A DNA stretch of 32,961 nucleotides from Pelomyxa schiedti. Lineage: Eukaryota; Protista; Evosea. Location of the stretch: positions 1 through 32,961 of the forward strand of contig JAHLWZ010000987.1 of assembly GCA_020536535.1 (NCBI GenBank). Reading direction: 5' to 3'. Shown here piece after piece: positions 2,820-22,400 of the stretch. The notes beneath the pieces were generated by a model. It was not told where the DNA came from, did not search any database, and was given only the letters and a program-made list of their open reading frames with translations. Both the position numbers and the translations under genes were made by a program. Within the stretch, counting starts at the first letter, position 1. The number at the start of each line of letters is the position of its first letter.

Positions 2820-2884
2820 TCGATGGTTGTTGTATTGAGGCGGAGTTGTGCACCGCAGTTCGTCGTACTGGGTTTTTTTCTTTT

Positions 2885-3104
2885 GAGACGGGGCACTTCA
2901 CACGGAAGTGCCCTCTGTCAAAAATAAGTGGGATTGTGATATGCCTGCCTCCAAGTGTGCTTGAGAGGCATTTCAAAAATAGGTGCGGAAAAGCGGGATT
3001 AGAGCACAGCGTTAGCCTCTAGGACCCCCTTTAAAAGAGTTTCCCCAAGATCGCCGTGACAGACTTGTTCCCACACCAGAGCATTCACTCCCTTAGGTAG
3101 GTAT
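2885..3104 (-). ncRNA. Candidate novel U1-like Sm-class snRNA (5' end AUACCUACCU)
   Basis: TCCCGTAAT element at -62. U1-like 5' end. Closing helix GGGA-GTGA-ATGC/GCAT-TCAC-TCCC. 10-bp helix 3068-3077 with 2982-2991. Sm sites TATTTTTG at 2974-2981 and 2919-2926, each followed by a hairpin. G-U pairs favour the minus strand. Confidence 0.7.
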
Positions 3105-3157
3105 TTAGTTTTCCTAACAACCACCGGTTCGAACTTGACCGGCTTCCCCCCACTCCA

Positions 3158-3166
3158 ATTACGGGA
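3158..3166 (-). promoter_or_regulatory. DUSE-like element TCCCGTAAT
   Basis: One mismatch to WCCCAYAA. Lies 62 nt upstream of the ATACCTACCT start, versus 63 nt at the U1 gene. Confidence 0.6.
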
Positions 3167-3243
3167 CACCCACAACGACCGTTGTTTTGAGAAATGTTTT
3201 CTTCACTCACTCCTGGTGCGGCACATTCTGAAAAAGTCAGTCA

Positions 3244-6126
3244 TCAGACGCCATCGGTCATTTTGAATAGCCAGTCAAGGCCGTCAAGGACGCCATCACA
3301 AGTGATGGCACATGAGCCCCTAATTTGGTAGGGATGGCCAAATTGGGTGAGCAATCCAACTGAAAAGTACTCGGCGACTTCCTGTGGACTCATGCATGGT
3401 AATAGGTCCTGCTTGTTGGCTTTTTCGTTTTGGTTTTGTTAGATGGATTCAGTTAGTTTTTGGCAATCCTGGGGGGGAAGGGAAGAACCATAGAAGAGTA
3501 CAGGAAGACCGGAAAGCTCTGGAATGATCATCAACTGCAGGTAGGGGATTAGAAAGATGGTGAATAGAGTACATGGACAACCTTGTGGAACTCTGTCCTG
3601 GCTTCCTCTGCGCGATCAAGGTCACACGAGTCGACAACGAATATGATTCCAACTGCACCGTGATAGCCTTGTGGAAGTTAGAATTGTAGCTCGCCTTAAA
3701 AATTAACTACTCTGTTTCAAAAGTTGGCTGTATGTGATGCCTATAGATCATGAGTAAATTTCACCTGAACATAATGACATACAGGGCCAAATGTCCTGTG
3801 TAATGGTTAATGGCACGCGAGAATAGAAAAGAGCTCACCAAAGTAACAAAATGTAAATTCTTGAACTCCACTGTTTCAATATCTGATTATTTGTTTCATG
3901 CGTGTGTTCCAGTAAAAGGTTTTTCAAACTTACTGTACCCAAAGGAAGGTATGCTTGAGTAGCTCCCTGTATCATTCAACTTAATTTTATAAAGCATTGT
4001 GGTTTTTCCTAGAAATAAGATCATGAATGACAGTTAACTGGCAGGAGTACCTGCAGCATCTAACCCTAAAACTAGAACACGCCGCGGAATGGCATACCTG
4101 CTTATCCAATTGTGCACACCGAAAAAAATAGAAGAAAACAAAGAGTTATGTGGCTTGGAAGGTCTATAGATCTTGAGTGAATAAAATCCTTCCAAGGGAA
4201 ATCTTACGGGCTTCCTTCAGAAATGGCACATGAGGATAATCTTTTTGTTTCTTTGAGCAACGCTGCTAGATATCTCTTCTTCCAATTTCCATTGAATCCC
4301 CCCAATTTGATTTGAAGGTGGTCCTTGGAATAAGTGTAACATACAAAGAAAAGCTGAAATCAGTTACATTCATTAAAAATGCAGTAGTTCTTGACCAGGG
4401 ACGACTTTCATACAAAGTCTTCCAAATGTGGTCACTTGACGCAAAATGGTTCATTGTGCGGCACGTACAACAAAGTTTGCACAGACATGCAGCATCAAGT
4501 AGGGATAAAATGTGGCTAGGAAAAATTAGCAGCAACAAAAACAATTTCTTGAATACATCAGAACATTTGTATGTAGGGTTGCAAAAAGGCCTAACTCTTT
4601 CGAACGAGTTAATTTTGCACTTTACTTAAGAGAACACCTGTAGAAGTAGCAGGCGAGTTGTAGGGGGAGTAATATCTTACAACGCAAAAACTTCCAAATG
4701 AACAACAAGCAACATGGACAATGTCATTCTTCCCCTTAAGTGTGGCTATTTCTGTAGGTGTTGATCGATTGAGTGTATCTCCCAGGCCTGCAGACACTGA
4801 GATTTCGGAAAAAGGGAAATTGGAGGGACACACCAAGTTGCCCATGTTCATTTGATCCCCAACTATAAACTGAATTCTTTTTTGTGACAGCAATTGAATG
4901 TGAAGCAGTGCAACCAGCGGCAATTTGAGCAATACCATCAATTGCTACAAGGCATGGAATGTTACGATTTGCATTGTCTCCAAGACCAAGTTGGCCCTTG
5001 CTGTTTTCCCCAAATGAAAACAGCATTCCACACTCGTTTACTACAAGGGAGTGACTATCTCCACAGGCGATTTGTGTGACGGTACTTCCTTGAAAAAATG
5101 TAACACTTTCAGGAGAAACCTTGGAACACTACAGACAAGGTTACATTATTGTAGGGATTAAGTCATTTCACACGTAATCTCCATTTCCTATACTCGGTTA
5201 CACACTGAAGGAAACATGGAACATGTGGACGCACCAAGTTGACCTTGAAGGCCAAAACCCCAAGTGTACAGCGCACCTTCCGTGGAAAGTGCAAGGGTAT
5301 GTTTCGATCCCGCAGCTACTTTTTCAATTCTAATGTTGTGACTGAAACAACAGAGCCTAGGAACATTTGCTTGTGGCCTGTAAATTAGACCTGGGGGGAA
5401 GAGGAACTAAGTACACACCTGGAACACTCGCCAAGGGGTGCATCACATTGGTCATCAGTTACATTTCCTAATGAGAAAAGTGGCCCATATCTCGGTTCGG
5501 GTTGTATTAGTAAATGGTCCCCACCAGCAAAAATGTTACGGAAAACTACAGGCCCTTTGATATTCTATCAGTTCCATACTCTGGTATACAAAGAAGTACA
5601 TACGGATAAAAAAATTTTTAGGCAATCTGTTGCACCAGCTTGTACCGCTTGGAATAGAGGGCACTTCCAGGTCCCACACCCATATATGGTCATGAGTTCC
5701 AGAAATTGTCCACACAGTACTTCTTCCACAAGTTAACCTTTTGAGCCACAGTCAAAAATTTCGAATGGCCTCCCACAATCACATTGAAGCAGGGAGTCCT
5801 ACGTGCTGGCTCGATACGGGCCAAAAGGTAATTTCTGAGGAGCTGGAGCTTCACTCAGGCCCCACACCAAAATCTCCCCAGCAGCCAGCACGGCAACGTG
5901 CCTACCAACAAAATCATTCGTGTCATCAAAATTTTGAGCACAGTGCAAGAGGCTTTCGTTTTTTTGTTGTTGTTTTCTTGTGCCTTTGACCACAAGAGAC
6001 GTGGGTTATTCCACCCTCTAGTCCAGACAAACACGGCACCAACGTCGGCGTCGTTACGGCCTCCCCTAAAGCTACACCCTCACCAATTGGATGACCCCAG
6101 TAGAACACCTCCTCCACTACGGACAT
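3244..6126 (-). CDS. RCC1-repeat + F-box + ARF-family GTPase fusion protein (multi-exon)
   Basis: RCC1 repeats VAAGSKHTLALSTEGALYTWGFGLQGQLG and IACGDSHSLVV...FGENSKGQLGLGD. F-box HILSLLDAACLCKLCCTCRTMNHFASSDHIWK. ARF motifs VLGLDAAGKTT, GIIFVVDS, ANKQD, SCA and DGLDWL. Stop TGA at 3244-3246. Confidence 0.85.
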
Positions 6127-9520: not shown

Positions 9521-9563
9521 GTAGTGGTGGGATATAATAATAACAGCCTTTCTGATAGATAAT

Positions 9564-9717
9564 ACAGGCGGGGGAGCCTCGTGCTCAGCACCGCCCTCAC
9601 TCAGTGAGGGTGAAGAGGTTCCCCTACAAGCCGTGACCAGTATTTTTGTGGCTGCGGTTGGTGTTTTGGTGCCGGTTCGCCCCTGAAACGCCATCCTCAC
9701 CCGGCAACACCCCCTGT
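9564..9717 (+). ncRNA. Candidate Sm-site structured small RNA
   Basis: Helix 9571-9580 with 9615-9624 encloses two hairpins that both have C-TCA-G loops. Sm site TATTTTTG at 9641-9648. Long 3' hairpin capped by GG-TTCG-CC. G-U pairs favour the plus strand. Confidence 0.55.
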
Positions 9718-17718: not shown

Positions 17719-17878
17719 ATACATACCTGACTGCGCACACCCTTGATCACCAAGGACGGGTGTGCTGTGGTGACTCCCGACTTGCACTCCTCGGCGGTCG
17801 CTGCATGAATTTCCGAAAGGAAAGCTCAGCAGTGTAATTTTTGTTTCGCTGGGAGCCGGCGCTCTGCGCTACTCCCTG
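17719..17878 (+). ncRNA. U1: U1 snRNA with variant 5' end AUACAUACCUG
   Basis: Helix H ACTGC/GCAGT. SL1 GCACACCC/GGGTGTGC with loop GATCACCAAG (U1-70K site). SL2 loop CTTGCACTCC (U1A site). SL3 TTTCC-GAAA-GGAAA. Sm site AATTTTTG. SL4 GGGAG...CTCCC. Confidence 0.95.
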
Positions 17879-19484: not shown

Positions 19485-22400
19485 ATGTTGCGGATCAGCG
19501 GACAGAGCACACCTACGACACAGAGAAAGATCGTATTCAAAGGGTTCAAAGGTAGGAAGTTGGGTGCCGCTTCTGTGGCCGTTTTTTTTTTTTTTTTTTT
19601 TCCCCTTACCAGGCGCCTTTTAATGCCGTTAAAGTGCCCCCGTCACTTCCCACGGACTTCCAGGAGAAAAATACTGAACTCCTAGTTGGTGCTATTCGAG
19701 CAATCCACGAGCATACGACAGTGACAGGCAGTCTCGAGGACTTGTACAAGGCTGTTGAGGATTTGTGCCGCAACAAATGTGCGCCTGCGTTGTATGATCG
19801 CGTGAGCGAAATGTGCAGCTCTCGTATGAAGACACTCTTACCACCCTTACTCAAGTTTGTTGTCTTTCTCTGTGGTTTTTTTTTCCCCCTTGTATGGCAT
19901 TACCTTATGCTTTCAAAGGCAAATGCAATTACACCAACAACAACAACCAGACATGGCACTACGGCATCTTGACACAATGTGGCACGAACATTGCAATCAA
20001 ATGGTGCCTTTTGGAGACTCTCGTTTCCTTCTTTTTTTCCTCATATTCCAAAGACCCTTATTCGAAATATATTTATGTATCTTGATAGATCGTATGTCCT
20101 TCACCTCACTGGTATACACTCTCTGTGGTATGAACTCAGTATTTCACAAAAATGCTAAGCACCCAATGAAATACTTGTAATACAGGAATTTGGCTCTACA
20201 ACAATTCAGAGACATCATAATGTCCAATGATGCTGCACTTCCAATTTTTATGGACTGCATTCTGAAACTGATTTCTAATGAACGTGAGGGTGAAATTGTA
20301 GACAGGATGCTCCTTAACAGTGCACTTCACATGGCAAATGACCTTGGCTTATACAAAACAATTTTTGAACCCCAATTCCTTCAGGTCCTGACCAATTCAC
20401 AAAATTTTCATACCAATTGCACTCCAGAAAACAATAGCCCACTATGGCGAAGTTAGCAAAAAGCATACTCAAAGTATGGATGTTCCAGAGTATCTCCGCT
20501 ACTGTGAAGCCAGAATTAAGGAAGAGGGGGAGCGGGTCTTACATTATTTATTCCCTGGAACAAAAAGTCTTCTGCTGTCGGCAGTTCAAGAACAATTGCT
20601 TAAAGCACACACAAGTTTTCTTCTTGAGAAAGGTTTCTTTGAACTACTTTTGTCGTATCAACCTGTGTGAAAGGCTTTGATAGTCTTGTACAAAACGAGA
20701 GACACACTGATCTTGAGCGAATGTATGACCTTTTTTCCCAAGTAGAAGAAACTGGCTCCATTAAACAGTTCTTTGTAAATTACATCAAGGTGCTTCAGTC
20801 ACCATCTTTCCTTCCCTCTCAATAATTTAAGGATAATTCAGAATACTGGAAAGCAGCTTGTTATGGATCCGTCTCGAGATAGTTCGATGGTACAAGATCT
20901 TCTGGCGTTCAAGTCAAAATTGCTTCAAGTTCTGGAGAAGTCTTTCCACAACGAGTCTGTTTTTGCCCAGAGCTTTAAGGTAGGTTGCTTCTTTGCTTAT
21001 ATATAACAAAGTTAATCTTTACAAGGACTCTTTTGAAAGCTTCATCAATGAAAGACCTAGTAAACCTGCGGAAATGATTGGTATGGCTGAGAGTGAGTTT
21101 TCTTTCCAGTAAATTTGTACTCCAAGCAAAATATGTTGACCAGTACCTGAGATCAGGGAATAAAGGCATCAGTGACAGTGATTTAGAGGCGATACTTGAT
21201 AATGCGATGTCACTCTTTCGATACATTAGTGGCAAAGATGTCTTTGAGGCTTTTTACAAAGTTTTTCTGTCTCGCAGGCTCCTACTTGGGAAAAGTGCCT
21301 CTCTAGACATGGAAAAAGCCATGGTCACAAGACTTAAGGCCGGTATGTTTTTACTTACCGTGCTTTATTCAACACCCAAAATTAGAGTGTGGCAGTGGTT
21401 TCACGAGCAAACTTGAAGGGATGTTTAAGGATATTGACCTGTCAAAGGATCTTCTCTCTCTATTCAAGTCAACGGTCGGCCACCATTTTCCAAAGACAAC
21501 CCACTGACACGTTTTACAATAAAACAGGCAGCAACACAAATGCCACAAAATCTGCAGGATATTGATCTTAACGTTTTCATTCTGACACAGTCATGTTGGC
21601 CCTCTACACCCACCATACAGGTTAAACTGCCAACGGAGGTAAGCTGCCTTTTCTGTCTGTATTCAACTAACTTCACCAGCTCAATTTACTGCAACAACAC
21701 TTCACTGATTTCTATTTGAAAAAATATGGAGGTCGCAAACTTCAATTCAATACTGCCATGGGATCATGCCTACTAAAGGCCTATTTTCCTACTGTGAGAG
21801 GAGTTTATTTCTCTTTTCCCTTATAATATAAGACAGATGAGGAAGGAATTTCATATGTCCCATTTTCAAGCAAGCGTTCTTTTGATGTTTAATCAATCAC
21901 CATCGTTGACTTTTGCTGAGATAAGAGAAGCAATTGGTCTAGGTTGCAGTGGCTTTCAATAAGTTTTCCTTTAATTCTGTGGCAGGGGAGTCAGAGCTGA
22001 AAAATGTGCTCTTGTCTTTGACTGGGAATAAAGTACCAATTTTGTCTAAAAGTCCAGTGGTAGTGCATTTCCTTGACCCACACTATTTTAATGAGACTCT
22101 AGGGTGGAAGCATAGAAGAAAGCGATGCGTTCAATTGGAATCACAAATTCTCTTCTAAGCAACACCGAATCAAAATCAATTCACTCCAAATACAAGAGAC
22201 GGTATGTGTGCAAAATAAGTAGGTTCCCTTACATACTACACCAGCCTGAGGAGAATGCCAAAACGAAGGAGAGTGTTTTTCAGGATCGAATGTATGCAGT
22301 AGATGCAACAATAGTGAGAATAATGAAAACCCGGAAACAACTGCACCACAATCAACTGGTTGCTGAATTGTACAAGCAATTGAAGTTCCCAGCGACGGTA

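Follow-up and report, generated by a model that had tools for sequence, protein, structure and literature searches.

The 32,961-nt stretch of Pelomyxa schiedti DNA analyzed here (hereafter: the window) contains on its minus strand a gene for a predicted RNA of ~220 nt (positions 2885-3106) with two Sm sites, delimited by its fold, its copies, the borders of its most distant paralog and RNA-Seq contigs. Judged from the sequence, this snRNA-type gene, present in four copies, is a genuine feature, which we leave unclassified. The explanation we prefer, and consider possible though somewhat short of probable, is that the product is a non-canonical Sm snRNA derived from U1 that would serve as an auxiliary reader of 5' splice sites. 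The initial annotation described an unrecognized U1-like snRNA; an Sm-class snRNA on a U1-like plan is indeed well supported by promoter, fold, copies and Sm sites, but since the RNA fails membership in the U1 family on the U1-70K loop and the junction, we do not file it as a U1, even if it may work like one. All genome-wide searches covered the P. schiedti assembly (52,367,397 bases in 5337 contigs); the published genome comprises 52.4 Mb, 5337 scaffolds and 149,016 introns (PMC8887013).

The gene is housed in an intergenic gap of ~425 bp, flanked by two other minus-strand genes, a ClpB-like AAA gene that starts near 2819 and an upstream gene (3244-6126) that ends at 3244 and encodes RCC1 repeats with a C-terminal Arf-like piece. 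Besides the window copy, three paralogs were found (L002, L003 and L004; identities of 96, 94 and 88%), L004 being the most distant; a covariance model identified no further copies among 150 scored candidates in the genome. L004 aligns with the window copy only over 2888-3168, an interval that runs from the promoter word to where the RNA ends; it differs at 20 positions of the body but has retained its promoter, its helices and both of its Sm sites. The terminal hairpin is followed on its 3' side by an A-rich run (2873-2884, minus strand), as seen after other Pol II-type snRNA genes.

The promoter is of the snRNA type, with a DUSE-like and a CG element at the spacing known from snRNA genes. 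The upstream element TCCCGTAAT (3166-3158, minus strand), a motif common to such genes, resembles the Dictyostelium DUSE, which is located ~60 nt above the start (PMC7919456), and the corresponding word is found 59-65 nt above the annotated starts of the U1, U2, U4, U5, U11, U12 and U6atac genes of P. schiedti. As the initial annotation had claimed, ATACCTACCT starts at 3104, 62 nt below this element, and the spacing is nearly that of the U1 gene of the window, which has AACCATAAT 63 nt above its start. The promoter word is intact in L003 and L004 and mutated in L002. The second element is a CG dinucleotide (3130-3131, minus strand), located 25-27 nt upstream of the start and retained by all four copies; here it is at -27, and almost every U1, U4 and U5 gene, as well as one U12 gene, has a CG at -25 to -28. 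A fixed CG ~26 nt above the start is seen upstream of U1, U2, U4, U5 and U12 genes (L005-L058); the U6atac gene is devoid of it. The distance from the promoter element to the ACCU of the predicted RNA is 67 nt (66-68 nt in U1 genes), and that from the CG is 33 nt (32-33 nt in U1 genes). In 24 of the 25 U1 genes of the genome the first A is preceded by TC, and by this rule the RNA would start at 3106; the start proposed earlier, 3104, thus falls within the predicted range of 3104-3106, but the arm may carry one or two additional A residues at its 5' end. A genome-wide search for the promoter followed by ACNNACCTR and an Sm site gave 16 matches, namely 14 U1-type genes and two copies of the two-Sm-site RNA, and none in the control. 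We do not propose a head-to-head partner on the basis of a reverse promoter-like word at 3168-3176: the word is not accompanied by a CG element and is missing from the paralogs. Elsewhere in the window, a hairpin-rich stretch with one ATTTTTG (9540-9717, plus strand) has no promoter word above it, either by reading or in the promoter scan.

The computed fold (minimum free energy -82.8 kcal/mol, z -3.84; none of 200 shuffled sequences as good) comprises a free arm and an outer helix P1 that encloses a junction with P2, Sm site 1 and P3; downstream of P1 follow Sm site 2 and a terminal hairpin. The free 5' arm, closing helix, Sm site and terminal hairpin that had been proposed as the U1 plan are all recovered, and so are the extra Sm site and hairpin; the two Sm sites map to 2980-2974 (site 1, AUUUUUG) and 2925-2919 (site 2). 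The arm (3093-3106; all parts of the RNA are given for the minus strand) is single-stranded, with an unpaired probability of 0.95-1.0, and contains in the U1 register the U1-like AUACCUACCU (3104-3095), with C at U1 position 5. P1 is formed by residues 3080-3092 and 2930-2945. In place of U1 stem-loop 1, there is P2 (2982-3077), a long irregular hairpin of 96 nt with a UUA tip and GCUAAC exposed in an internal loop, whose helices are 98-100% paired in all copies. Sm site 1, which has six U residues in L004, lies in the three-way junction that P1 closes and is single-stranded in all four copies; P3 (2946-2970) follows, with a tip at 2960-2955 that resembles the U1A loop when compared with U1. 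Sm site 2 is positioned 4 nt past the closing helix, and the terminal hairpin GGGCACTTC/GAAGTGCCC spans 2891-2913. Both Sm sites are present in all four copies, i.e. each copy exhibits two unpaired PuAU4-6G motifs next to hairpins.

These copies might be non-functional, recently duplicated pseudo-snRNAs. No homologs were recovered outside the species, and one metagenome scan with the pattern GGCTAACGC plus two Sm sites returned 32 matches, none of which fitted the family model; covariation therefore rests on four close copies. L004 exhibits two two-sided changes (both UA to CG), of which one affects P1 and the other the terminal hairpin; this total was reached in 27 of 500 shuffles, so with only four sequences the evidence from two-sided changes is weak. 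The lack of recovered homologs, the paucity of two-sided changes and the broken promoter element of L002 would all suit pseudo-snRNAs, but a paralog with 20 body changes that keeps its helices, Sm sites and promoter, and whose likeness to the window copy stops at the gene borders, would not. Neither would the RNA-Seq contigs from two environmental samples that fall inside the gene. Two wastewater RNA-Seq assemblies contain one short contig each that maps wholly within the predicted RNA (166 nt with 5 differing letters, mapping to 2928-3091, and 183 nt with 11 differing letters, mapping to 2913-3093); Sm site 2 is spanned by contig X6. The runs are flagged as possibly DNA and the contigs carry no ends, strand or level; we read them as RNA, because DNA would be expected on the flanks too. 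Over the surrounding 5 kb, the other pieces from the same two assemblies are short partial matches to protein-coding stretches. The confinement of the contigs to the gene suggests that it may be transcribed, and we consider pseudo-snRNAs a very improbable explanation.

Rfam searches up to an E-value of 10, carried out for sequences of 801 nt and 156 nt and for the three paralogous loci, gave no meaningful match to any family; likewise, scores with U1 and U5 models built from the P. schiedti genome were not significant. The RNA contains neither CUGA nor RUGAUGA as boxes C/D of U3, and no CCCUAA telomerase template, although CCCUAA may not be the telomere repeat of this species. The genome itself yields 25 U1, at least 27 full-length U2, 8 U3, 10 U4 and 18 U5 matches, and it also encodes U6, U6atac, U11 and two U12. 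The idea that the RNA supplies a missing Sm site to U2 was discarded, given the at least 27 full-length U2 genes. Among the other snRNA genes, we observed a second class of U4 (L041, L042 and L043) that is distinct in its 5' end (CACC/CGCC) and its 3' domain, a second U12 copy (L033:1501-1637; 41 bits) with a shortened 3' stem-loop, and more than a dozen near-identical U6 copies (82-nt matches); in the three of these that were read (L062, L066 and L067) a short stem replaces the usual 5' end and the 75 nt around the match contain no promoter word.

As an alternative, a divergent U11 had been named whose AAGGGA would recognize U12-type donors, and the RNA does share its overall plan with U11 in a genome that contains ~90 minor introns (PMC10639083). 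However, an ordinary U11 (67.5 bits) is encoded on another contig, as detected by a search that did not list the two-Sm-site gene, and with this the alternative falls. Moreover, AAGGGA is mostly held in the closing helix, with GGGA paired in P1, the pairwise likeness to the local U11 is insignificant (p=0.42), and the RNA exhibits neither the free A-rich 5' reader nor the RF00548 match expected of U11. We regard this identity as scarcely credible.

It is also improbable that the RNA is a divergent U4atac or that it harbors a U5-like core within a longer sequence. Rfam detects no U4atac in the genome, nt 40-97 of the RNA can be drawn in a Y shape like that of paired U4atac and U6atac, and when this fragment is folded by itself with U6atac, stem II, a hairpin and stem I result. 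Against this, the score of the Y-shape is not significant (p=0.09), the shape is lost in L003 and L004, there is no K-turn between the would-be stems, and the full RNA binds U6atac with only -4.8 kcal/mol, compared to -19.3 kcal/mol for U4/U6. A better U4atac candidate is found on contig C676 (~50591-50740, plus strand): as judged from visual inspection of the pattern output, it has the promoter word ~60 nt above, a 9-bp 5' complement to the stem II strand of U6atac, CCAAUGA (as in the K-turn region of human U4atac), GCUAAC and an Sm site. This RNA is probably a U4atac overlooked by Rfam. In an earlier study, a K-turn was reported for every U4 and U4atac RNA identified there, and for Acanthamoeba and Physarum U11, U12 and U6atac were listed and U4atac was not (PMC2396436). 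Another U4atac-like pattern match, on C804, was rejected for want of a promoter element. As for U5, its dimensions are matched by P2 with Sm site 1 and P3, it ranks first among the pairwise snRNA matches (p about 0.007 if the Sm site is included), and a donor-complementary 5' end has been proposed for the U5 of Cyanidioschyzon merolae (PMC10158995). This likeness becomes insignificant once the Sm site is left out (p=0.15); loop 1 GCCUUUUAC is missing, the local U5 model misses the RNA, and 18 ordinary U5 genes exist.

The relationship to U1 (RF00003) is suggested by the promoter, the register of the arm, ACCU at nt 7-10 of a free 5' arm, the closing helix, an Sm site 4 nt after it, the terminal hairpin, and the GCACUC hairpin tip of three copies. 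The true U1 gene of the window (17719-17878, plus strand; RF00003, 75.2 bits), which belongs to the A5 class, served as the reference. The 25 U1 genes of the genome comprise 14 with A, 9 with U and 2 with G at position 5, and no ordinary U1 with C5 is found among them. Many of these genes (L005-L029, including that at 17719-17878) form head-to-head A5/U5 pairs ~140 bp apart with two promoter words in between, and four (L025, L026, L028 and L029) are ~139-nt variants devoid of stem-loop 3; A at position 11 is common to these four variants and to three copies of the two-Sm-site RNA. In register, the arm of the window copy matches U1 in 9 of 10 letters, while the other copies depart further. The arm differs in each copy, at positions 3, 3-4, 6 and 11, with C5 and ACCU invariant in all four, whereas true U1 arms hardly vary beyond positions 5 and 11. 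Change events affect 4 of 33 arm sites and 31 of 606 body sites (p=0.10 for a higher rate in the arm), 10 of 288 in P2.

The same comparison reveals clear departures from U1. The RNA is 220 nt long versus 160 nt, it has a three-way junction instead of the four-way junction of U1, it contains an extra internal Sm site, its arm is variable among copies, it has no stem-loop 3, and its terminal hairpin is another one, without the GCG/CGC core that is (nearly) invariant in U1 stem-loop 4. The U1-70K loop GAUCANNAAG of stem-loop 1 is missing: the RNA contains no GATCA and only a GATCT inside a helix of P2. The earlier statement that the RNA is devoid of both the U1-70K and the U1A loops is correct for the former but needs qualifying for the latter, as P3 ends in a U1A-like GCACUC in three copies (GCACAC in the window copy). 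GCACUC is contained in the loop of stem-loop 2 in 22 of the 25 U1 genes, and 0.8% of shuffles place it in a hairpin loop (p=0.008); compared to the U1A loop (UGCAC), the tip AAGCACUC of the three copies is a smaller loop that lacks the preceding U residues. For the stretch between the two Sm sites, the best alignment is obtained with a U1 variant that has no stem-loop 3, in its stem-loop 2 region (p=0.005 for L003 and about 0.15 for the other copies). The U1 model built from P. schiedti genes gives only 6.4 bits (E-value 0.55), and a profile of U1 cores produced no match with the RNA.

This missing model-level likeness would be natural if the RNA were an unrelated new member of the Sm class whose U1-like start reflects chance and a common preference for AUAC starts, for instance a guide in some other pathway, e.g. 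3' end processing of the U7 type via a purine-rich target. U2 begins with AUACCU and the probable U4atac with AUAC, so the first letters of the arm carry little weight and only about five are specific to U1. On the other hand, this would require coincidence for those five additional in-register letters, the U1 layout and the GCACUC tip alike, and we find an unrelated origin decidedly unlikely. The frame of the RNA looks U1-derived; its history could have involved retention of the arm and helix, enlargement of stem-loop 1, insertion of an Sm site, shrinkage of stem-loop 2 and loss of stem-loop 3.

The donors that such an arm could read do occur in P. schiedti. The two cullin donors to which the initial annotation drew attention, AG/GTAGGA at 19552 and AG/GTAGGT at 20980, hold up: they keep an open cullin-like frame in a hand-built model with 16 introns, in which the joined reading was checked for an open frame and G occupies position +4 in 4 of the 16 donors. 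Over 487 introns predicted by a seeded rough gene finder, in which +4 was unscored and 14 of 16 seed introns were recovered exactly, the +4 letter is T in 40, C in 24, A in 23 and G in 13% of cases. G at +4 is not enriched over the intron background of 12.8%; scaled genome-wide, 13% corresponds to roughly 19,000 introns. The word AGGTAGGT is likewise not enriched in the genome (1014 observed versus ~990 extrapolated), and the genome-wide counts of donor words by +4 letter (A 1250, C 692, G 1014, T 1679) follow the extrapolated background, with little statistical power. An apparent enrichment of AGGTAAGT and AGGTATGT in word counts at the examined loci was dismissed, as it stems largely from the U1 genes themselves.

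With AG/GUAGGU, the arm of the two-Sm-site RNA is predicted to form a duplex of -12.9 kcal/mol, versus -10.3 kcal/mol for the U5-type U1; the latter pairs with such donors by wobble, hence there is no strict need for a C5 reader. U1C stabilizes the donor duplex with the help of U1-70K and the Sm ring, which means that other proteins would have to substitute here; only one clear gene for U1C was found in the genome. The proposal that C5 reads AG/GUAGGU is thus favored by the arm register, the invariance of C5 and ACCU and the absence of C5 among the ordinary U1 genes, and weakened by the variation of the arm, the start shared with U2 and the binding of the U5-type U1. The variation itself is compatible both with a small repertoire of readers for +4 G donors and with a relaxed constraint. 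Reading of AG/GUAGGU donors is plausible and the best single interpretation, if below even odds.

A less likely possibility, and on balance a doubtful one, is that the RNA descends from U1 but has acquired a new job, e.g. as a protein scaffold, a store of Sm rings or a guide acting through the exposed GCUAAC loop, so that the arm and the GCACUC tip would be leftovers and selection would act on P2 and the two Sm modules. The body, P2 in particular, is at least as conserved as the arm, GCACUC is lost in the window copy, and no copy has lost an Sm site, as would be expected from such a change of function. It would not be expected, however, that C5 and ACCU remain invariant, that every change in the arm still suits a plausible donor, and that the arm stays single-stranded.

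If the RNA is instead an auxiliary donor reader derived from U1, known snRNA biology suggests that it would be transcribed by Pol II and receive a trimethyl cap, and that an Sm ring would assemble on site 2 and perhaps on site 1 too. The free arm could then pair with +4 G donors, GUAGGU in the case of the window copy and GUAGGG, GUGGGU and GUAGAU in the case of the other copies, and the particle may help or compete with ordinary U1 at +4 G introns. By analogy with U11 and its own proteins, U1-70K might be replaced by proteins bound to P2 or by the second Sm ring. We speculate, as an unlikely extension of this reading, that the RNA forms a third donor-reading snRNP beside U1 and U11, with two Sm rings and without U1-70K, in which the arms of the copies together cover +4 G donors.

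Partial parallels exist in other systems. The SmY RNAs of nematodes (RF01844) are ~80 nt long, have one Sm site and are tied to trans-splicing; they resemble the two-Sm-site RNA as auxiliary Sm RNAs with a hairpin-Sm site-hairpin arrangement, but differ in size, in the single Sm site and in having no U1-like arm, and the SmY match on Sm site 1 and P3 (10.9 bits) is at chance level. U11 (RF00548) sets a precedent for donor recognition by an RNA that is built like U1 but served by proteins of its own. As in U11 and U1, an Sm site (site 2) follows the closing helix of the two-Sm-site RNA at a distance of 4 nt, whereas the arm sequence is different from that of U11, there is no sequence likeness, and the true U11 is located elsewhere in the genome. 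The variant U1 snRNAs of vertebrates can be aligned to U1 over the whole length, while the two-Sm-site RNA has a replaced core and two Sm sites. These variants are described as expressed offshoots of U1 with an uncertain role in splicing (PMC3561869, PMC10870369). Changed U1 arms are known from Entamoeba, Mastigamoeba and Physarum, with the U1 hallmarks kept where described (bioRxiv 10.1101/2022.06.08.495308). In C. merolae, which has no U1, the U5 with the proposed donor-complementary 5' end also carries extra domains (PMC10158995). Like the RNA described here, it is a non-U1 snRNA with extra domains and a 5' end that could pair with donors; it is, however, the cell's own U5, while 25 U1 and 18 U5 genes exist in Pelomyxa, whose two-Sm-site RNA has no U5 loop 1.

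A limited literature search returned no earlier report of this RNA or of any snRNA with two Sm sites. To our knowledge, the donors are read by U1 or U11 in every well-studied spliceosome. Pelomyxa donors are almost free at position +4, and if the two-Sm-site RNA reads those with G, loose splice signals would be met by a new reader assembled from U1 parts without the U1-70K site, and the minimal needs of U1 would become testable. Should it indeed form a third snRNP, it would complement the A5, U5 and G5 classes of U1 such that each of the four +4 letters has a Watson-Crick reader. If its job is another one, it would still represent a conserved Sm RNA in a genome whose known snRNA slots are filled by other genes.
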